This document shows positions 6,152-64,000 of a stretch of DNA of 64,000 nt, piece after piece. The stretch's first letter is position 1; every line of letters starts with the position of its first letter. The stretch is from Paramoeba atlantica (Eukaryota; Protista; Discosea). The stretch lies in NCBI GenBank assembly GCA_977017575.1, contig CDRNVI010000002.1, positions 930,001 to 994,000 of the forward strand, in the 5' to 3' direction. The position numbers and the translations under genes were made by a program. A model generated the notes under the pieces. That model saw only the letters and a list, made by a program, of their open reading frames with translations. It made no database searches and had not been told where the DNA came from.

Positions 6152-6646
6152 GGTCCCAATCACCACGGTCCCAATCACCAAAATCAACATTTCCAAGCAA
6201 AAATTCGAATCCACGAAAACGGAAATGGAGAGCGGTCGGGGGACAAAAAATACATTTATGCGACCCCAACAAGGGGGCATCCGCCATTACTCCAAAACAT
6301 CCCCGAGGCTCTACAAAGAAGCAATCTGCTTCATCTCACAAACACAGCTTGAATTCAGACCTCGCGAACCAGTGGCCCACTGTTAAGCAACTTCGTACGT
6401 AAGCCGTTTCGTTGTCGCGTTCGGTCGTTGCGGTGATTGGTCAGAAAATAACCCATTTCAACTCGTCCACCACGTAAAACGCTGAAATGCGCAGGGGAAT
6501 TGCCAAACTCGTCTTCCGCACGCAATTGCGTTGCTGAAACAGGGTCCAGCAAACAGGCACCGTCAGGGATATGCTTTACGAGAGAGGCTTGATCGTCCCT
6601 GCGTTGTTCTGTGTCGAAATCTTGGCGTGCTTTCAAACTTGTGCGT

Positions 6647-6785
6647 TCAGTGGGCGACCAGGTGGAACTTTTTCGCCACTTTTTCACAGGGCGACCAGGT
6701 GGCCATTTTTTCAGGGGGTGATCTGGCCACTTTTTAGGGTGTGGCCAGATGGCCCCTTTTTCGGAGGGTGGCCAGGTGGCTATTT
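6647..6785. repeat. Second 27-bp array (~5 copies), same orientation as 5390-5765
   Basis: Same GGTGGCC...TTTTTCAG..GGTGGCCA unit. Confidence 0.85.
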
Positions 6786-6873
6786 TTTACTGATTGATAA
6801 GACGAAAGTGTTTTACGAAGTTTAAGACGAGACTGATTGATTTTACTGATTGATAAGACAAAACTGTTTTTGT

Positions 6874-7099
6874 AGAATCCAGGTATAAAGGGAATTCAAG
6901 TATAAAAGGCGAGTGAGATACGAAGCAACAGATGTAGCAGATTCCCACTGAAAAGAAATCGTATCTCCCTGCACGAATTTGGCTCCAAGCTAGCAAGCGC
7001 ATAGGCATTTCTCGTGCAGGGAGAGACGATTTCTTTTCAGTGGGAATCTGCTACATCTGTTGCTTCGTATCTCCCTCGCCCCTTTATACCTGGATTTCT
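6874..7099. repeat. Long inverted repeat / foldback
   Basis: 6908-6976 is the reverse complement of 7012-7080 with about 2 mismatches and a ~35-nt loop. Outer arms AATCCAGGTATAAAGG / CCTTTATACCTGGATT. Confidence 0.9.
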
Positions 7100-18560: not shown

Positions 18561-19266
18561 ATTTTCACCGCTGTGGAATCTCTCCTGCAATTTACTGTAC
18601 GCTATTGGAACTCTCCGGCAATGTATTGCGCGCTTTTGAAATGATCAGTGCACCAGCGTGCGGCACCGCCTAAATGTGGGGCGGGTAGGTGCTAACTGTA
18701 TGTACATCTATAGCGCATTCTATAGCGCATATAAATTCCAGACCCCTGTTGTTCTTAAAAGTTCGTTTTTTCCTGCAATTGATTCGGCGCTCGCAAAGAA
18801 ATCCCCCTACCCCAGGGTGTGGTCATTCGCGGGTATACAATATGCGAGCACACAAACGCAAACATACGAAAAGAAATAAAACAACAGAAACAGCCCGTGC
18901 ATAACCCCGCGCCGCTTCGCCGCCTGAAACTTTTTGATCTCTTTTTTTGACGCGGCTACATATGCGCATTTTTGGGCCGAAACCACGTTGCGTTTCGAGT
19001 AACTGTGCGAGAGGTCTCCAATACGGTGCCACTTTCCAAAATTGGACAATTTTTACAAATTTTGATCCCCCCATATTTTCGCCCCTACTCCTGTATGTTA
19101 TTGAATATTCACGAAGCATGTTTCTCTCATTCAGTATATATTTTTTACATCCCTACGTAACATCTTCTTTTGCGAATAAGTTGATACTTGTAAAAGAATT
19201 AATATTTGAACAAGTGGGAGTTATGCAATACTGATTTTTTTGTCCACTCAACACGAGAATGAGATA

Positions 19267-26831: not shown

Positions 26832-26950
26832 AACATCATACTGTTCCTACAATCTGGTACTTCATTCTGATTTTATGAATTCATTAAACCTCATACTGTT
26901 CCTACAATCTGATACTACATTCTGATTTTATGAATTCATTAAACATCATA
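26832..26950. repeat. 55-bp tandem duplication
   Basis: TCATACTGTTCCTACAATCTG...ATGAATTCATTAAAC twice; a third start is cut by the element at 26951. Confidence 0.85.
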
Positions 26951-27908
26951 GGACACTGCAAGTTTACCCTCCCGGTGGATGGCACGAAATGGCACAGGAT
27001 GGCGCGGCGAGTCTAGTTTCAGGAGGAATCGTCATCCTCCTAAGTAGCATTTTAAATAGGAATAAATTTTCTGATGCTCTTTTGTAGTTTTGTATATGGT
27101 TTGATAATTCATAATTTGGAGGTGTCTTTACGTCACGAGTGGGGAGGTAAGTAAGCACAATCTTCCAGCTACCCTAATCTCCTCTTGCGAAAAAAGCGTG
27201 GTCGTAGTGATGATGAATTGAAGCAAACTAACTTAGACCATTTCATTGTTTATGATAAGAATTGTACCGAAAGAATGGCTTCTTCTGATTCTCTTCACCT
27301 CACTATCCTCGAGTCATGAACTCATATGAACTTATGGGAGAGAAATAACGTAAGATAAAAAAACGTTAACCACCGCGTTTAATGGAGCGACTACAAACTT
27401 GTACTTACAGTTGCTACCGCTTATGAGTGCCCCCAATTCTGGTACGCTTATGAGTTCCTTTTTCTAAGGCGAATGTTTTTGTACCTACTTTTTGCGAAGC
27501 GATCTTTTTTTTGCACAGAACCAAAATTCATAAAAATCCCAACAACCCTACGTCAGGCTGCTCTACAGACTCGCTCACTGAGCGGATAATCATTTTAGCG
27601 CCAGTATTATTGTCGAAGACAACCCGCGGCGCTAAGCACCGCGGGCCCGAATTTTCGTTTTTTTATGGCTCGAATTCTGGTCTGGTACGCTTATGAGCTC
27701 CTTTTTCTAAAAACCGGGGAACTCATAAGCAGGAGGGGTATAGTGCTTGGAACCACCCCGCCTTTTCTTGTAAACGGGTACCAAGATCCACATGAAGACG
27801 AGCGCCAAAGGTCCTCATTGTGCCAAAAATCTTCGCTCTGGATGGCACAGGATGGCACAGGATAGCACCGAATGGCACAGGATTGCACAGGATAAGTGCA
27901 TAGTGTCC
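26951..27908. mobile_element. Non-autonomous GGAC...GTCC element (PHIS-like) with ATA TSD
   Basis: ATA|GGACACT ... AGTGTCC|ATA. 10-bp subterminal repeats (GATGGCACAG) in the same orientation at both ends. No ORF. Confidence 0.7.
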
Positions 27909-27957
27909 ATAGACCACCATAATTCCATAAACAAACGTAATTCGGTCCAATTTTTTG

Positions 27958-43943: not shown

Positions 43944-45720
43944 CGGGGGGGGGGGGGGGGCACGAAAACTAACAAGGTCCGCATTTTAGCGTCCTGAGGC
44001 CGTTTGAGCTGATTTTTGTCGCAAACGAGAGATCTCGTTCTGAATATCGTGTCTACACTATTTGGATCCCGTTTCTTCTCAAAAACAATTATTTACAAAA
44101 TACTGGAATTTTGGCCAAAATATTTTGCAAAAAGTACTGAAAAATGTAAAAAGGTTTATTTTTTCTTCTTTTTACCTTATTTTGGGCAAAGGGAATAGAT
44201 TAAAACGTCGCCAGCTATCACCAGAACAGTGTTCATATCTTGTGCACATTGTTTGTGCACACAAACAACTATTCCGGATACGGCACGTATGATGAACTGT
44301 TCAGAGAGCTCTGTTTCTCGGTACAAAGCTGCTATTCCAAAGGCCAAGGAATTGTTGAACGAATGTCACGAGGCGTGTGTAAACCATAGCTGTAAAATTG
44401 CGGTGGTTGTAAAACTACCGCTCTACACTCGATTATTGAAGAAAAAGTGAACAAAAACAGTGAAAATATAAAGGGGAACACAGTAATATAATAGAAGAAA
44501 AAAATATAAAAGGGGGCTCCGGTGGACCAAAACTGAAAAATTGAAAAAAATGGGGGGTCCAGGGGGGGGGTCATGGTCGAGCAAATTTTTTCGAAAAAAA
44601 TAGTTTTCGAAAAAAAAACGCAGAAAGGGTAGCCGGGGTCTTGGCGCGCATTTTCCACCCCCCTACCCGGGGGTGACCCCCCCGCGTATCCGCAGGACGG
44701 GTCCGCCAAGTTCGGATTTTTTCGGAAAAAAAATTTTGAAAAAAATTTCAACTTGGCGAAAAAAATGGCAAAAAAATATTTTTCCAAAATCGTTTCCCCT
44801 ATTGTATTTTGATAGTTTGGGACCTACACTAGCTTTCTCCGCAGTTGTTTTCGCAAGGTATCCCTTCTTCTAACCGTGGTGCGCCCCTCAAAATGACTCA
44901 TTTTTGACTATAAAAGGTGAAAAAGTATTTTTCGGACCCAAATGGGCCTTTTTGTGTCGAAAGAATGGTATGGTTGGAGTCGTATTCTCTACCCAATACG
45001 TTCAGTAGGGTTCATGCTTACGAGTGATTTCCCACACGAAAATGTCGGATTTAGTGCTCTGACAGCAAAAATACGCGAAAATCACCCCATTTTTACCCGA
45101 AATTCGGCTATTTTTGGCTATAATCTTTCCGTTTTTCAGGCTAAATTTTCTTTTTTAGGCTCTTCGTTAAACGCGGTGGTAGTTTTCAACGCGAAGAGCG
45201 CAGCATGAGTGACTTCTAAGTTGAAAACAACCACCGCGTTTAACGAAGAGCCTAAAAAAGAATTGAAAAAAAAGTGAACAAAAACAGTGAAAATTTCAGT
45301 AATCATGTTAATTTATTAATAATTATTAATAATTGACCCTTTCTTTTAATAATAATTATTCATAATTATTATTAAAATTATTAATACAGCTATGGCGTAA
45401 ACACGCTAAAGAGACACCCCACGCGCCTCGCTACACTACGTGCGCGTGGAGGTGGGAATACTGGCTATTAAGACCTACTTTCTGGGTACTTTTTGGGCCG
45501 TGGTACGTAAAAATTACGAATTTTACCCGTTTTTCAATTTGCAAAATCTTTAAATTTTCACTTTTGTAACTCATTGGAAACGTTTTCCGGTGAACGTTTT
45601 TGTATTTTAAATAGCGTAGACACGATATTCAGAACGAGATCTCTCGTTTGCGACAAAAATCAGCTCAAACGACCTCAGTACGCTAAAATGCGGACCTTGT
45701 CAGTTTTCGTGCCCCCCCTG
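43944..45720. mobile_element. TA-flanked non-autonomous TIR element (Tc1/mariner-type ends)
   Basis: ~120-bp TIRs (Gn-CACGAAAACT...CGTGTCTAC) at 43944-44060 and 45608-45720. TA at 43942-43 and 45721-22. Confidence 0.85.
44397..45256 (+). mobile_element. Hairpin-ended module (Helentron/HINE-like), copy A
   Basis: Starts GCGGTGGTTGTAAAACTACCGC and ends in a ~40-bp stem (45151-45190 / 45220-45259). Alignable to 47567-48482 in inverted orientation. Confidence 0.7.
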
Positions 45721-47232: not shown

Positions 47233-48505
47233 CACCCCCGCCAAAAAGTATTGTTCACAAAAATGGCCTACACAAAAGTATTGTATTTAATAGTGTCGAC
47301 CATTTTTTTGAGTTTTGACCTGAATTTTAGTTGTTTTTTTCGAATTTTCAGGAAATTAGCATAATGAGTTCTGATATACGCGGCCACTTGATCACCTCGA
47401 GGGAAGCTGAGTGATTTCTCTCCTATTTTTGTGCTTCACTATACGTTTACACAGATCCGATATGATAATGTCCAACTTTTTGGAGGCCAGTGGAAAATCG
47501 TGAAAATCGACAAAAAGCATTGTATTTATTAGTATCGATCAAACATTCGTGGTCGATACCAATAAATTTAGGCTCTTCGTTAAACGCGGTGGTTATTTTC
47601 AACTTCAAAGTCACTCATGCTGCGCTCTTCGCGTTGAAAACTACCACCGCGTTTAACGAAGAGCCTAAAAAAGAAAGTTTGGCATGGAAAGCTGAAGAAA
47701 ACAGAAAGATTGTAGCCAAAAATAGCCGAGTTTCGTGTAAAAATGGGGTCATTTTTGGGTATTTTGGAGCACTAAATCCGACATTTTCGTGTGGGAAATC
47801 ACTCGTAAGCATGAACCCTACTGAACGTATTGGGTAGAGAATACGACTCCAACCATACCATTCTTTCGACACAAAAAGGCCCCTTTAGGTCCGAAAAATA
47901 CTTTTTCACCTTTTTCGGTCAAAAATGGGTCATTTTGAGGGGCATACCACGGCTCGAAGAAGAGATACCTGGCGAAAACAACTGCGGAGAAAGCTAGTGT
48001 AGGGCCCAAACTCTCAAAATACAATAGGGGAAACGATTTTGTAAAAAAAAAAATTGCCATTTTTTTCGCCAAGTTCAAATTTTTTCAATTTTTTTTTCCG
48101 AAAAAATTCGAATTTGGCGGATCCATCCTGCGGATACGCGGGGGGGTCACCCACGGGTAGGGGGTGGAAAATACGCGCCAAGACCCGGCCTACCGCTTCT
48201 GCGGGTTTTTTTAGAAAAATATTTTTTTCAAAAAAAAAATCGTGCGGTAACCCCTCTAGGACCCCTCTAGACCCCCCCCATGGACCCCCCCTGGACCCCC
48301 CCATGGACCCCCCCCTAGACCCCCCATTTTTTTCAAATTTTATTTTCGATTTTGGACCACCGGAGCCCCCTTCTATATTTTTTTCTTCGATTATATTATT
48401 GTGTTCCTCTTTATATTTTCACTGTTTTTCACTTTTTTTTCAATAATCGAGGGTAGAGCGGTAGTTATACAACCACCGCAATTACAATACGTTTTGGCGG
48501 GGGTG
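47233..48505. mobile_element. TA-flanked non-autonomous TIR element
   Basis: TA|CACCCCCGCCAAAAAGTATTG ... CAATACGTTTTGGCGGGGGTG|TA. Confidence 0.85.
47567..48482 (-). mobile_element. Hairpin-ended module, copy B
   Basis: Inverted copy of 44397-45256 with an expanded ~12-13-bp minisatellite at ~48250-48325. Sits in the right end of the 47233-48505 element with no TSD. Confidence 0.75.
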
Positions 48506-59157: not shown

Positions 59158-59967
59158 ATGATACATACAACTTTCTTGGACACTGATTCTCTTGTTTCTC
59201 CCCCCAGAAAACGTCGTATGACGGGTAAGGTTAGCTTGTCCATTATGCCAAATGAAATTCGACTCCACCGATTTGTTCAAAAGATAAAAAATCGGCCACG
59301 GTCATGGAAACCCGGTGTGGACGTTTGCAAGTGGAAAGGGGTGATATGCATTGGTGAAAACATTACGGAATTACATTGGAACAATTTGGATTTGCGGGGA
59401 AACGTTACATGGGATGCAATTCCCGAATCGGTTGAGAATCTTTTGATCGGCAAAGACCTCTACGGGTTGGATAAGCTTCGGGGGGGATTCGATATGAAGT
59501 TGCTTCCTGCAGTTCTAAATTCCCTTGACATGAACGAACATGCATTTGCAGGCCTGGTGGATTTTTCCCATGCGCCTCGTGAGATGAAATTTTTTGTTGC
59601 TGCTGGCAACTCGCTACATGGGCCTCTGGATCTGACGCTTATGCCATGTACCATGGAACATGTAGAGTTACAGCGAAACCTTTTTGTTGGGACACTAGAT
59701 CTCACCAAGCTTCCTTCTGTGTTGGAATTGCTCCATTTGGGAGATAATTGTTTTGCGGGAAATGTGGATGTTTCAAAACTTCCTGATTCAATTTTGGAGA
59801 TTGGTCTTTATCGTAATCGACTACAAGGGGAGATAGATGTTCGCGATCTCCCAGATGGACTTCAAAAGCTTGAATTCAACGGTAATAATGTTACTTTTAA
59901 GGAAAACTTTAAACCCCCTAACGTGTTTTTTGATCCTGTGGACGACCAATATTTCCATTATTTCTGA
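59158..59967 (+). CDS. Short LRR protein, copy 7
   Basis: TGKVSLSIMPNE...SWKPGVDVCKWKGVIC followed by ~7 LRRs. Confidence 0.87.
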   Translation: MIHTTFLDTDSLVSPPRKRRMTGKVSLSIMPNEIRLHRFVQKIKNRPRSWKPGVDVCKWKGVICIGENITELHWNNLDLRGNVTWDAIPESVENLLIGKDLYGLDKLRGGFDMKLLPAVLNSLDMNEHAFAGLVDFSHAPREMKFFVAAGNSLHGPLDLTLMPCTMEHVELQRNLFVGTLDLTKLPSVLELLHLGDNCFAGNVDVSKLPDSILEIGLYRNRLQGEIDVRDLPDGLQKLEFNGNNVTFKENFKPPNVFFDPVDDQYFHYF

Positions 59968-60916
59968 AATTTCGCACCATCTCATGAGAAGCATTAGAAC
60001 TTTTCCTTAGTTTGCTGTCTCTGATTGTTTGACTACCGCGAACTTTGATTACACTGTCGCCAAAAATCATTGAATTTTTAATTATTGTCGAAACCGTGCA
60101 ACTTTTAATAAAAAATTCATTAATTTTTAATTTACCTTTCTAATTTGCCTTTCTCTGAAAACCTCAGTAATACATGATGACAAGTCGGAATGTGAATGTG
60201 CGTTTCAAGCGATGCAGTACCGCTTTGCTATTTAGTTACGCAGTTGATGTAACAAATACTAGCGTAAAAAGTGTGCTAGGTAAAGTACGAGGGGCCCACT
60301 TACCGCAAGAATACGAACTTTCTAAGTTTGCTGCGAATATTACCCATCACCGTCCTTCTTGGAGTACTTCAACTCCTGCCTGTGAGTGGGAGAACGTGTT
60401 CTGCAAAGATAACATACATGTTACGGGTATTGATTGGAGTTGTTCTCACCTTTCCGGTTCACTGCGATGGGATTTTCTGCCCCTCACATTGTGTACGCTT
60501 TCATTGATGGACAACAAACTTACGGGAATTGTTGAACTAGACATGTTTCCACAGCAGATAGTGTACGTAACATTAGTAAGTAACTTTTTTAAAGGCACGA
60601 TTGACGTAGAAAAATTGCCCCACAGTATAAGTGGTCTGGATTTGGAGTACAATGGACCCCCAGCAACTTCGGTACATTTCTGGGGCCACTATGGGACACT
60701 GTGGGCCACTATGGGACAATCGGTGCCACGATTGGACACTTCAAAGTTTAAGTTGTGCCTTTTGATTGCTTTTATGTTGTGTATATTGAGTTCGTAAGGA
60801 TTTCGTTCTCATGTATTTTTGGTCGACCACGTACAGCAGTTGTAAAATAGAACGAAATGAAGTAACTATGTACATCTAGAATTAAACGTCTGTTTCACAG
60901 TAATGAAGCTACTAAA

Positions 60917-61813
60917 ATGGAAAAAATGTTTTGTCCACGCTGCAAAGCAGACCGTAACGTAAGTCTTGGAGAACCCCGAAGGTGTGTAATGTGTGCCTGT
61001 CCCATCGAATGCGATGTAAAGGACCCCTGTATTCAGTGTCACAGGGTTTCAGTTCTCATAGGTTCAAACTACTGTCCGTTGTGCAATTCCCCTCAAGATG
61101 GAGAACGACTTCCCGCCAACACCTTAGACCACATTTATGCTCGTGGTCTGAAGGAAGAAAATGTTCTTAACGCATGTGCTGAGTACGTGGGTCGCATGCT
61201 CTGCGGTACGAAGCTTGCGTTCGGACATGTGGCCCACATCCTTATTCTTATCAAAAGGGCAAAAGATGTTTCTATAAAAAGATATATCCCGCGTTCGGCC
61301 GAAGCAGTTTGCTCGTATTTTAACCATGCGTTGCATCCAGAGGAGCGGGGCTCTCTGTAGGAGTTTTTGCGAAACCTCTGGAACTTGTATGAGGGCAAGC
61401 GCGCCAATGAAAAGAAAGTTCTGAGAGACACAAAGACTGCGTTGGTAGCAAGTTTTTTGTCGGTTCTAGGTGACTCAACATTTGAAATTGATCGAAAGTT
61501 TGTTCACCAAGTTCAGGGTGAGATTATGGACAAACTTGGCAATTCAATGGAGGAGAATGTTCCTACTGAACTTCTTTCTATCCGGGACGACCTTGTTCAA
61601 CTGCGGATTCTCAAGAAGGGAAAGACTTCGAATGCTCATCTTATTCACGTTGCCCGACCTCCTCGTCAAACTTTGACTGTCGCAGATCAGGAAGTTGAGA
61701 TAGTTGAAGTTCGGAACGATGAAAACCTGGTCAGCAATCCGAAGCGGCAACGCGTTTCCCGCATTGCTTCAACTTCAAGTTCGAACACTTTGCATTTTAA
61801 AAGTCGTAAGTAA
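60917..61813 (+). pseudogene. Transposon accessory gene with zinc-ribbon N-terminus and one in-frame TAG
   Basis: ORFs 60917-61360 and 61367-61813 share a frame, separated only by TAG at 61358-60. Four CxxC pairs at the N-terminus. Confidence 0.65.
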
Positions 61814-61995
61814 GTTGTAGGCCTGTAAATCGCAAATAAGTTTTAAGCGGTTATGTTGTAAGTGAAAAAGTTGCAAGTAAGGAATTTGGAAGTAAGGAAT
61901 TCGAAAAAAAAATCGTAAATCAAAGAATTTTATTTAATATAGAATCTTTCTTTCCTCTAATAAAATCATAATAATCTTTCCTCTACTTGATACTG

Positions 61996-63164
61996 ATGCT
62001 TGGCCGTATTGACACCCCGGAATATGACACACCCGTTAATATATCTGAAACGACGCACCACCTGATACATCCGGCGATGCACCTGAACCTGATGCTCCCT
62101 ACGAAAATAAATATTCAGAGTTGTCTTTATGCGGTTTAACGCATCGCGCTCTCACCTTTCTAAAACAATTTTATCCCTTTGAAGAAATTTTTGCGAGCTT
62201 TCTTTTTTTGCGGTGTGGGGGTAGCTACGACATTGTATCAGAACTCATATCCTTGAAATTCGGAACCGGTTGGTCTGAACGTTCTTGTTCTGACAAGATA
62301 CCCGCGTTTTTTAAAAAACTGCATTCCGATATGAAGGATACATGGCTTTGTTTGGATTCCGATATTTTGCACCATGAATCAAACGCAGTTCTTCCTTTTT
62401 GGGATAAGGACATAAAGGTGGTGATGGACACAGTGCCACTGTACGTTGATAGCTTGCCTCACTGCTATCAACCCAAATATGCTACACACGTCGTGAAAGC
62501 GCTCGTAGCATCTACAATGTCTGGGTATGTTTGCTTCACAGCAGACACATTGTACTGTGGAGCCTCATCCGACGCCGTTATTCAGGACTGTAGTGGTATT
62601 CTGGATTTTCTGGCACACAATCGTGTTCGCGCTCTTGCTGACGGGGGATTTTACGATGGTCTTACTGATAGATTAATAGTACCCCATTCTAAAGCCAAAA
62701 TTTGGTGTTCGAAGCGCCCAAAATCTAAGTCTATGCAGAAACATCATGATTCAGAAGCAGATGGTAAAATGTGCTTCAATGAAAAGTTGGCTCACTTTAG
62801 ATCGCGGGTCGAACACATTTTTTCTCGTTCGTGCTGTGGCAAATGGCTGGCTTTTAAGCAGTGGACTCGTAGTCCAGATTTTCTTTACTATGCTTTTTCG
62901 TGCGCTCTCATGGTTCATAACATGGAAGTGTTTCATAAACATGGACCTCAAGGAAGATATCCACCTCTTACCCCTGAGAAAGTGGAAGCAGTTAAAAAGA
63001 AGATAATGGAGCACAAAGGACAATCTTCCAGATATGGAGTATCTGACAGTTCTACTATCACAGGTCCGATGGACAAATACACGTATCCTAAAAATCTTGA
63101 TGCGTATGTTTTTTTTCGTGAACAACAATCCCCCCACCAGCACTCAACCAATAACCCCCTATGA
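61996..63164 (+). CDS. Harbinger/IS5-like DDE transposase (DDE_Tnp_4-like), probable 1-nt frameshift near the 5' end
   Basis: VMDTVPLYV, ALADGGFY...LIVPH, FNEKLAHFRSRVEHIFS. ATG at 61996 is one base out of frame with the main ORF near 62047. Confidence 0.85.
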
Positions 63165-64000
63165 TCATACACTCTACGCTCATATACAGTTGCCCCTCCT
63201 CGCTATACTTAGCTAGGTACGCTACTTATCAGAGAATCACTTGCCTCTATGTCGTCACGATTCTCCGGCGACGCTCGATTTTTGGGGCCACTGTGGGCCA
63301 CTGTGGGTCGTCTTGTGCCACTTAGTCCACTACGGGCCACCCGGGGACTGCATTGGGTCCAATGAGTTCGAAGGAAGCTTGAATCTAATGCATCTGCCCA
63401 AAAATATGAGAGTACTGCACGCAGGTCATAACAATTTGAGTGGAAATGTCATTCTTTTACATTTGCCACCGATTATGAAGTCACTGTATCTATCTTATAA
63501 TAAATTCTCAGGCACCCTGGATTTGCAGCACTTACCATCGGAGTTTCAAGATCTTCGATTGAATGTAAATAATTTTTCCGGTCTTATATTCTTGGATGAC
63601 CTTCCTAAGGGCCTCAAAACATTATGGCTGTACGGCAACGAAGAACTGCAAGGAGAGATCGACGCAAGAAAGCTTCCTGAAACTTTGGCCAGCTTTTCCT
63701 ACAGCGATACAAAAATTGAAATTTTACCTACTCCTCAACAATAATTAGTATAAAATTTATACTCAATATTTCTACAATTACAGTACTCAATATTACGTCG
63801 CTTATACCGTCAAAGCATAATTTATGGCCTTGGGACATAAATGACATTTTATGAGTTGTGACCAAGGACGAATGCGTAGCACCTGGATCACTTTTGTGGT
63901 TTGGGTTGTATGGAAACTCACGGTGGAGCATAACCTGTGGTCATGGCTCTCATCGATTTTGTTTACCTTCTCTGGCTTTACGGTGACACAGAACCTGAAT

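Follow-up and report, generated by a model that had tools for sequence, protein, structure and literature searches.

A recently mobile PHIS-type transposon interrupting an LRR gene in a putative relative of the Prokinetoplastina

The window, by which is meant the whole 64-kb stretch of DNA that was analysed, contains an LRR gene split in two by a transposon carrying two genes, and also a shorter derivative of a sister family. The two families are called F1 and F2, and the features are:

26951-27908, + strand: non-autonomous deletion derivative of family F2, 958 bp, ends GGACACT...AGTGTCC (26948..27911 with its duplications)
60174..60653, + strand: 5' part of the host LRR gene, taken from the list of open reading frames; weak match to LRRNT_2; ends with the target AAT, an Asn codon
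60651..60653, no strand: left target-site duplication AAT, with C at 60650 just before it
60654..63360, + strand: family F1 transposon, defective copy, 2707 bp, termini GGACCC...GGGTCC
60654..60659, + strand: left terminal inverted repeat (TIR), GGACCC
60677..60737, + strand: left subterminal repeat array, 10-bp-phased, unit GGGCCACTRT
60917..61813, + strand: ORF1, cysteine-rich partner gene of 298 codons, interrupted by TAG; intact in copies L003 and L005
61358..61360, + strand: premature TAG in ORF1; CAG in the three other F1 copies
61996..63164, + strand: DDE_Tnp_4 transposase gene, with a frameshift after 62051
62427-62429, 62640-62642, and 62811-62813, + strand: catalytic codons D146, D217, and E274, respectively
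63285..63348, + strand: right subterminal repeat array, 10-bp-phased, oriented like the left array
63355..63360, + strand: right TIR, GGGTCC
63361..63363, no strand: right target-site duplication AAT, with G at 63364 just after it
63364..63744, + strand: 3' part of the host LRR gene; match to LRR_4 (E=8e-7)

The limits of the element are set by two kinds of evidence. Homology to the three other F1 copies of the assembly (L001, L003, and L005), which lie at unrelated loci with different flanks, stops at bases 60654 and 63360, and contigs from other runs on this organism pass directly from 60649 to 63360, without the intervening 2710 bp, the length of the element and one AAT. An earlier note made from the sequence alone had described exact ends within 60651-63363, an AAT duplication, perfect TIRs of about 6 bp, and direct 10-bp subterminal repeats, and had proposed comparing the ends of other copies. 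All of this is borne out: the three other copies terminate at identical bases, and the span given comprises the element and both duplications. The triplet AAT is found on both sides, and the empty site proves that it is a duplication. It lies outside the element: one AAT is still present in the empty allele, and the Asn it encodes is required by the LRR consensus, so that counting AAT as element sequence was rejected. As the element begins with G and ends with C, a duplication of 3 bp is not strictly separable from one of 5 bp (CANNG). The longer duplication is less likely, judging from family F4, the sole family favouring 3 bp, where the left terminal base is A and the ACT duplication is perfect.

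The TIRs of the window copy are perfect over 6 bp and match at 9 of 12 positions when extended. The unit GGGCCACTRT is matched five times, compared with 0.06 times expected, and all matches lie no more than about 80 nt from the two ends. The repeats have a 10-bp period and are found on one strand at both termini, and the right array is one unit short relative to L001 and L005.

Removal of the element plus one AAT turns the host gene into an intact, stop-free reading frame of 286 amino acids that keeps the 24-residue LRR register, as had been anticipated, and the joined protein is 30% identical to a neighbouring paralogue (E=3e-36). The LRR gene family of the host is expanding, and the transposon disrupts one of its members. 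The suggestion to look for empty-site alleles proved fruitful, as an exact, footprint-free empty joint was found in two sequencing runs. In run X3 it lies in a contig of 1001 nt whose left and right flanks measure 527 and 453 nt (0 and 2 mismatches, respectively), while in X1 it has a depth of 55 with only 25 nt on the shorter side. Run X2 gave a contig with the filled left junction, and the empty joint was not seen in that run. The depths in X1, 55 for the empty joint, about 55 for the variant with T at 61358, and about 98 for the flank, suggest a heterozygous insertion. X3 has almost zero depth throughout the F1 interior, and this sample thus largely lacks the family. Since other samples keep an uninterrupted LRR gene, the element is a recently mobile one.

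The empty allele could equally be the ancestral state or the product of a precise excision. Some PIF/Harbinger-derived elements excise precisely, and an old insertion, ancestral at this locus and later excised, would agree with the clean empty site and with the presence of both alleles in X1. This history is nevertheless unlikely, given that X3 largely lacks the whole family and that the window copy differs from an intact copy by only 0.26%; moreover, either direction would still imply a mobile element.

The genes of the window copy are both broken. Compared with L005 it has T for C at 61358, giving TAG instead of CAG, and it lacks four bases (CCGT) after 62051, which shifts the transposase frame. 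The TAG had been flagged for a check in the reads, where T was found as a minority variant in X1 (about 55 of 266) and was not found in X2. A frameshift had been placed at about 62047; the comparison with L005 agrees with it, with the gap after 62051, but the deletion is seen in no Logan contig, a type of contig that drops rare variants. The description of the element as near-intact was apt, and a fully intact copy exists elsewhere in the genome. This copy, L005, differs from the window copy by seven substitutions and encodes a 298-aa cysteine-rich ORF1 protein and a 390-aa DDE_Tnp_4 transposase, both intact; no residue of the DDE triad is missing, and both ends are complete. According to BLAST, the three other F1 copies are 97.6-99.2% identical to the window copy.

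All but one of the four F1 copies carry defects, in L001 for instance D146S at a catalytic residue, and the element had zero coverage in the one RNA-type run. One could therefore regard the two genes as domesticated host genes or inert relics in an element that no longer moves. We find this very hard to uphold, since the insertion is polymorphic with an exact empty site, one copy has complete ORFs, triad, and ends, the lesions are private to each defective copy, and non-autonomous derivatives with target-site duplications exist. Present-day activity of the element we infer from the polymorphism, as all F1 copies differ from one another and a new transposition event was not witnessed.

The transposase of the window matches Pfam DDE_Tnp_4 above the gathering score (E=2.6e-10), as do all 27 aligned relatives, and D146, D217, and E274 are invariant among these 27. 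A structure model (pLDDT 84.7) has its best matches in HARBI1 (TM 0.55/0.61) and ALP1, followed by IS702, IS112, and IS5. The IS5-family transposases score nearly as high as HARBI1 in the fold search, with a TM by hit of 0.67-0.68 for IS702 and IS112. The HMM search that had been proposed and the fold search thus agree with the original description of the enzyme as PHIS/Harbinger-like. NCBIfam gave no significant match to an IS5 subgroup (best E=0.04), and Foldseek against the PDB gave only weak ISCth4 matches. Detectable relatives number 103 among 1.84 billion protein representatives, and the ten that were checked all stem from metagenome data (ENA, JGI/IMG, or Logan), none of them with a family name. 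A scan that started from a five-sequence alignment and used one or two peptide patterns yielded a single JGI contig (L009), which was uninformative, and no relative in prokaryote genomes (185,579 species) or IMG/VR; relying on so few patterns, the blank result is weak evidence.

The ORF1 protein is about 260-300 aa long and consists of an N-terminal region with eight cysteines, resembling a double zinc ribbon, followed by a helical region. A Pfam search with three orthologues at E<=10 gave no Myb, SANT, or MADF match and only sub-threshold zinc-ribbon matches, in keeping with the earlier statement that the second gene is not of the Myb type. No DNA-binding domain was recognised by Pfam or in the low-confidence AlphaFold model (pLDDT 55), which had no match in Foldseek and Atlas fold searches, and the Atlas features search found no family. 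Two matches were obtained among 5.8 billion proteins, both from ENA data, and the one that could be located (P0110) belongs to this assembly. Homologues of ORF1 are found upstream of the transposase in F1, F2, F3, and a second assembly.

The related families, all in this genome except one in the second assembly, share the pair of ORF1 and transposase, TIRs of 6-7 bp starting with GG or AG, unidirectional 10-bp-phased subterminal repeats, and the target C|ANN|G, mostly ANT. All eight complete elements have TIRs of 6-7 bp and a 3-bp duplication that starts with A and is flanked by C and G. The duplications of F1 are AAT three times and AGT/AAT once, while those of F3 (ATT), F4 (ACT), and the F2 copy in L002 (ATT) also fit ANT. 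Two of nine fall outside ANT, namely ATA in the F2 derivative of the window and ATG in L010. The F2 derivative at 26951-27908 has C and G flanks, carries GGATGGCACA repeats that are direct at both ends, and retains the 3' end of a transposase ORF. Direct 10-bp repeats are present at both ends in F1, F2, F3, and L010.

The Harbinger/IS5-type DDE domain, together with TIRs and a short duplication (0-3 bp), places the lineage in the PHIS superfamily (PIF/Harbinger-ISL2EU-Spy). It shares with PIF/Harbinger proper (Harbinger3_DR and PIF/Pong, with HARBI1 and ALP1 as domesticated members) the DDE_Tnp_4 fold, a 3-bp duplication, and two genes, the second probably encoding a DNA-binding protein presumed to bring the transposase to subterminal sites. 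It differs in that the partner is cysteine-rich, zinc-ribbon-like, and confined to the lineage, and not a Myb/SANT/MADF protein, and in its targets: none of the duplications AAT, AGT, ATA, ATT, ACT, and ATG is TWA, so the contrast to the canonical Harbinger target drawn at the outset stands. NuwaII (C|TNA|G) likewise has a 3-bp duplication within a 5-bp target, C and G flanks, and an ambiguity between 3 and 5 bp, but its triplet is TNA and not ANN/ANT, and the Nuwa partner is described as Myb/SANT; the targets of NuwaI and NuwaII (CWG or C|TNA|G) are not those found here, which are C|ANN|G. ISL2EU elements duplicate 2 bp (A|AT|T) as opposed to 3 bp, and Pfam gave no match to the THAP domain or YqaJ exonuclease of that type. 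Spy elements have a single ORF and no duplication, while two ORFs and a duplicated AAT are found here. The bacterial IS5 family (IS702, IS112, and IS5) has the same catalytic fold and short duplications, but a single gene.

By description, the nearest group is Pangu. Pangu elements have ANT duplications, TIRs of 11-40 bp starting with AG or GG, and two ORFs, with a transposase that has no extra domain, a second ORF that has no known motif, and a position adjoining IS5 (Han et al., 2015, PMC4482050). The ANT target that the earlier note had named for this clade agrees with the same text. The chances seem about even that the lineage is a plain Pangu member, a group known from animals, fungi, and algae, in a new host phylum with nothing else new to it. 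Most of the duplications (AAT, AGT, ATT, and ACT) conform to this, as do the GG/AG starts of the TIRs, the two ORFs, the transposase made up of HTH and DDE parts only, the second ORF without a Pfam family, and the IS5-family fold scores that almost equal that of HARBI1. On the other hand, two of the nine duplications (ATA and ATG) are not ANT, the perfect TIRs are 6-7 bp (9 of 12 when extended) against 11-40 bp, and the invariant C and G flanks of C|ANN|G and the direct 10-bp arrays are not mentioned for Pangu in the available text of PMC4482050. The host is a kinetoplastid, and the ten checked of the 103 relatives are metagenomic and bear no family name.

The host assignment follows from one protein tree and from gene organisation, which point to a kinetoplastid related to Prokinetoplastina. 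In a maximum-likelihood tree the TrpRS of the window (best identity 70%) groups with the Prokinetoplastina PhF-6 and PhM-4 (100/99) inside the kinetoplastid clade (82/94). Because of this grouping the host would be a kinetoplastid that is not a trypanosomatid; the earlier note had spoken of a kinetoplastid, which this upholds. Of 26 ORFs of at least 250 aa in the window, 24 are on the + strand and the remaining two, on the - strand, overlap ORFs of the + strand, and the conserved genes are uninterrupted by introns. The Erv domain of the QSOX has its best match in TbQSOX, and the TrpRS in PDB 3I05. Rfam had no match in the 64 kb. An ESM Atlas search with SRP54 gave only generic eukaryotic and bacterial clusters, and the exact sequence of this protein matched no other record; nothing specific to a lineage came from searching the PDB with one PPR protein and two orphan ORFs. 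The assembly was deposited at ENA as an analysis, and its contigs have metagenome-style names, which could raise the thought of a contaminant or chimera in which the element does not belong to a kinetoplastid genome. That is exceedingly improbable, as the real long ORFs of the window are all one-stranded and intron-free, the TrpRS, QSOX, and PDB affinities are those given above, and the flanks recur unchanged in four independent runs that bear a single organism label.

Kinetoplastid genomes are textbook cases of genomes with retroelements and almost no DNA transposons. The searched literature holds one report of class II elements in kinetoplastids, which concerns Merlin (Lopes et al., 2021, PMC8101967): the Perkinsela copies were judged inactive, and no verdict was reached on those of Bodo saltans. 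Such elements are thus rare but not unknown in this group, which qualifies the earlier remark that one here would be notable. The two cases are alike in being class II elements of non-trypanosomatid kinetoplastids, while Merlin belongs to an IS1595-like superfamily with 8-9-bp duplications (PMC8101967), and an intact copy and insertion polymorphism are found here. A Merlin-like ORF is present on L003, and peptide and k-mer comparisons did not match it to the Bodo saltans or Perkinsela sequences in the supplements of PMC8101967.

Very probably, then, the element is a cut-and-paste PHIS transposon, related to IS5, in the nuclear genome of a Prokinetoplastina-related kinetoplastid. The autonomous form would encode ORF1 and the transposase on the same strand. 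The transposase (340-397 aa), predicted to consist of a helical (HTH-like) bundle at its N-terminus and a DDE domain of the RNase H fold (D146, D217, and E274), would bind the 10-bp-phased subterminal arrays, probably aided by ORF1, whose own binding is presumed, and would excise the element at the short GG...CC inverted termini. Reinsertion at 5'-C|ANN|G-3' (mostly CANTG) with a putative 3-nt stagger would leave the 3-bp duplication. The window copy would have inserted at the Asn codon within one LRR repeat. Because of the nonsense codon in ORF1 and the 4-bp deletion early in the transposase gene it could now move only in trans, with proteins that the intact L005 might supply.

The intact master, the sister families, the derivatives, and an insertion whose state differs between samples (present, heterozygous, or absent) together argue for very recent cut-and-paste transposition in this deep branch of the kinetoplastids. 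The host range of PHIS elements is thereby widened, and the lineage-specific partner protein and unusual end architecture are open to biochemical tests. A bolder reading, which we hold tentatively and consider somewhat doubtful, is that the lineage founds an undescribed PHIS group, distinguished by a zinc-ribbon partner, asymmetric unidirectional arrays, and the C|ANN|G target, that is still transposing and is the first active class II element of kinetoplastids. With similar reserve, such a group would so far have been seen only in the present kinetoplastid genome, in a second assembly of eukaryotic appearance, and in unnamed metagenome contigs. If true, it would offer a natural system for the expression of promoterless DNA-transposon genes inside polycistronic units. 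The lineage also poses the problem of element gene expression where transcription is polycistronic and mRNAs are trans-spliced; among the copies whose host surroundings are clear, too few to generalise from, the element genes run in the same direction as the surrounding genes in four of four.

The element that interrupts the LRR gene belongs to a family here called F1, and its interior consists of two ORFs on one strand.

Features of the window copy
60651-60653 and 63361-63363: target-site duplication AAT, with C before the left AAT and G after the right AAT
60654-63360, + strand: F1 element proper, 2707 bp, beginning GGACCC and finishing GGGTCC
60917-61813, + strand: ORF1, broken by TAG at 61358
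start ATG 61996, + strand: transposase ORF, with a frame change after 62051

The earlier note had given the element exact ends, and 60651-63363 is indeed duplication, element and duplication, with the same terminal bases in three further copies. The short TIRs that it described, of about 6 bp, are a perfect inverted repeat, GGACCC/GGGTCC, which when extended matches at 9/12 positions. GGGCCACTRT occurs five times in the whole window (0.06 expected by chance), every time within ~80 nt of the two element ends; these units keep a 10-bp phase and lie on the same strand at either end, as had been noted. The three copies were reached via a protein search with the transposase and all lie in the ENA assembly ERZ24900291. 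They display 97.6-99.2% identity (BLAST), their flanks are unrelated, and homology breaks off at identical first and last bases.

Copies of F1 and their lesions
Window copy: ORF1 with TAG for CAG at 61358; transposase without CCGT after 62051; one subterminal unit fewer at 63293
L001:4663-7382: ORF1 with +5 bp and -8 bp; transposase full length, GAC>AGC changing the invariant D146 to Ser
L003:3996-7151: ORF1 intact; transposase interrupted by a 474-bp MITE flanked by TA, and with a 1-bp deletion
L005:3154-5874: ORF1 (298 aa) and transposase (390 aa) intact; 7 substitutions (0.26%) relative to the window copy

The lesions of each copy are private to it, which fits independent decay of the copies after transposition. 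The window copy is defective but very young, and belongs to a PHIS transposon with two genes; the genome encodes the required proteins intact, in the master copy L005. In contigs of the sequencing runs the TAG at 61358 is present, though only in a minority. The 4-bp deletion behind the frameshift, seen when the copies are compared, is absent from the run contigs, which drop rare variants. An uninterrupted transposase ORF need not be functional here, since P0001 from L001 (376 aa), the only full-length transposase first recovered, carries Ser at the catalytic D146 (L001:~6436-6438, corresponding to window 62427-62429). The termini of the MITE nested in L003 (L003:5371-5844, at a position equivalent to window ~62040) are long, inverted and G/C-rich, AACCCCCCACAGCG...CGCTGTGGGGGGTT, and flanked by what looks like a TA duplication, which suggests that this genome also has a family of Tc1/mariner type (Stowaway-like).

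When the element and one AAT are removed, a 286-aa ORF without stops is restored, as had been claimed. The 24-residue LRR register is continuous across the junction (…LDLEYNEFEGSL…), and the restored ORF shares 30% identity with its paralogue upstream, at 59158-59967 (E=3e-36). One AAT is host sequence, since its Asn codon supplies the conserved LRR asparagine. The tandem paralogues, 59158-59967 and 60174-63744, have LRRNT-like N-termini, and the element lies in the second; the contig L008, which holds an element of family F3, is also bordered by an LRR gene.

Logan contigs from four runs of one organism were compared with window 59500-64000. An empty-site allele was found as an exact joint in runs X3 and X1, passing from 60649 to 63360 and skipping 2710 bp, that is the element and one AAT. 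In X3 the contig is 1001 nt long, with flanks of 527 nt (left, no mismatch) and 453 nt (right, two mismatches); depth over the F1 interior is almost nil, while the flanks match at 99-100% identity. This depth suggests that the whole F1 family is present or absent between samples or strains. In X1 the empty joint has a depth of 55 (shorter side 25 nt), the copy-specific T at 61358 also ~55, and the flanks ~98, so the insertion looks heterozygous. A contig of X2 covers the filled left junction and reaches 26 nt into the element; the empty joint was not found among the X2 contigs. The insertion into the LRR gene is thus polymorphic among samples, and the element mobile.

The transposase is clearly of the PHIS/IS5 type. 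The window ORF matches Pfam DDE_Tnp_4 above the gathering score (E=2.6e-10), in agreement with the original assignment, as do 27/27 aligned relatives (best E=8e-17); four of these also touch DDE_Tnp_1 weakly. Across the alignment of 27 sequences D146, D217 and E274 do not vary; they lie in the motifs DTVP, LADGxF and RxRxEH. A confident AlphaFold model built from this alignment (pLDDT 84.7, pTM 0.79) predicts a bundle of helices at the N-terminus and, after it, an RNase H-like core. Ranked against Swiss-Prot models, the predicted fold comes closest to HARBI1 of several vertebrates (TM 0.55/0.61), then to Arabidopsis ALP1 and ALP1-like, the bacterial IS702 and IS112 (TM by hit 0.67-0.68), and ISH11 and IS5 InsH; among solved structures the model gave weak matches to ISCth4 only, and the NCBIfam IS5 models did not match the protein significantly. 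When 1.84 billion representatives were searched exhaustively with phmmer, only 103 relatives were returned at E<=1e-3. The ten that were looked up were all ENA, JGI/IMG or Logan metagenome data without any family name. The branch is therefore sparsely sampled.

ORF1 is a real, conserved gene that evolves faster than the transposase. Homologues lie directly upstream of the transposase in F2 (L002; 25% identity, E=4e-18), in F3 (L008), and in the F5 locus L010 of the independent assembly ERZ21831137 (E=1e-6), where kinesin and EMP24 genes are its neighbours on the same strand. The F4 element of L006 (1162 bp) has a decayed ORF1 homologue as its sole gene. Full-length homologues have four CxxC-type pairs within the first 60-75 residues and then a helical region. 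The second gene had been called non-Myb, and in Pfam it matches none of Myb, SANT, MADF, THAP and YqaJ, with zinc ribbons matched only below threshold. Among 5.8 billion proteins there were two matches, both ENA data; the ESM Atlas held nothing nearer than a score of 0.69, and a fold search with the poor model (pLDDT 55) matched no fold. From its position, its cysteines and the analogy with Harbinger partner proteins, ORF1 may bind DNA. In L010 an inverted partial copy of the Cys-rich coding region (~2560-2700) lies upstream of ORF1, an internal rearrangement.

The ends were compared in eight complete elements of five families, and for the target the F2 left end from L002 was added.

Element ends and duplications (slashes delimit the duplication)
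F1 (window, L001, L003): left C/AAT/GGACCC, right GGGTCC/AAT/G
F1 (L005): left C/AGT/GGACCC, right GGGTCC/AAT/G
F2 derivative (window 26951-27908): left C/ATA/GGACACT, right AGTGTCC/ATA/G
F3 (L008:3752-6382): left C/ATT/GGTGAGT, right ACTCACC/ATT/G
F4 (L006:4472-5633): left C/ACT/AGACCC, right GGGACC/ACT/G
F5 (L010:2359-5445): left C/ATG/GGAACCC, right GGGTTCC/ATG/G
F2 (L002): left C/ATT

The C and G flanks (window frequency 0.22 each) and the leading A are invariant, and the third base is T in 6/9 duplications, which gives a target 5'-C/ANN/G-3', mostly the palindromic CANTG. As G is the first base of the elements and C the last, a duplication of 5 bp is not formally separable from one of 3 bp; it is the less likely reading, because in F4 the left terminal base is A, yet the ACT duplication is perfect. 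Every family has arrays in 10-bp phase, running in the same direction at both ends, which start ~27-40 nt inside the left end and stop ~30-65 nt inside the right. Their direct orientation is therefore conserved across families, and no peculiarity of a single copy. The unit is family-specific (GGGCCACTGT, GGATGGCACA, ACTCACAGCG and a GTGTAA-type unit). The F1 core, GTGG(G/C)CCAC, is near-palindromic, which softens the asymmetry in F1, whereas the F2 and F3 units are non-palindromic, and neither family has reverse-strand copies.

PHIS groups are mainly defined by their duplications: TWA with a Myb/SANT partner in PIF/Harbinger, A/AT/T with THAP and YqaJ in ISL2EU, none in Spy, CWG in NuwaI and C/TNA/G in NuwaII (PMC4482050). 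The lineage fits none of these, the C and G flanks being all that it has in common with NuwaII. Pangu is there given an ANT target, as in the earlier note, TIRs that begin AG or GG and measure 11-40 bp, a motif-less second ORF and a position adjoining IS5 (PMC4482050). Compared by description, the lineage is like Pangu in four respects, but its TIRs differ in length and two of its duplications are not ANT. The element is PHIS and, by description, nearest to Pangu; that the lineage forms a separate PHIS group, set apart by partner protein, end architecture and target, is possible, if less likely.

Going by its genes, the host is a kinetoplastid related to prokinetoplastids and not a trypanosomatid. 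All real window ORFs of at least 250 aa are uninterrupted and on the + strand, and include SNF2, lipin, PPR, CPSF73-like, TrpRS, QSOX-like and SRP54 genes. The first match of TrpRS in the PDB is 3I05, from T. brucei; for the Erv domain of the QSOX-like ORF the best match is TbQSOX. The closest named TrpRS in a large protein database are those of EukProt PhF_6 (70%) and PhM_4 (61%), both free-living Prokinetoplastina; trypanosomatids, Neobodo and Bodo come next with ~58-61%. A maximum-likelihood TrpRS tree bears out the kinetoplastid origin of the contig: the window groups with PhF-6 and PhM-4 at 100/99 inside the kinetoplastid clade, with diplonemids and heteroloboseans apart.

In the literature searched, no PIF/Harbinger/PHIS element was reported from kinetoplastids or Prokinetoplastina, and PMC4482050 does not mention kinetoplastids. 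Before Merlin was described in Bodo saltans and Perkinsela, kinetoplastid reports were of retrotransposons only (PMC8101967, 2021). A PHIS element in a kinetoplastid is notable, as had been argued, with two qualifications: the host is not a trypanosomatid, and with Merlin already known from these two, class II elements are rare in kinetoplastids rather than absent (PMC8101967). Several class II superfamilies appear to be present in the genome. ORFs of other mobile elements lie near PHIS copies at L003:3567-4019, L003:11100-11531, L005:304-1107, L005:5876-6373 and L004:6817-7587; the types at these five places are DDE_Tnp_IS1595 (Merlin-like), DDE_3 (Tc1/mariner-like), hAT dimerisation domain, integrase (rve) and reverse transcriptase. 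The Merlin-like ORF matched nothing among the Bodo saltans and Perkinsela sequences of PMC8101967.

The element ORFs are co-oriented with neighbouring host genes in 4/4 copies with clear context (window, L001, L006, L010; n=4, not significant), an arrangement that would permit expression via polycistronic read-through. A ~40-75-nt repeat unrelated to the PHIS families occurs at window 45145-45262, 47575-47676 and 19009-19081, at L008:~6645-7010 and at L004:~792-895, the first two copies forming an inverted pair ~2.4 kb apart.
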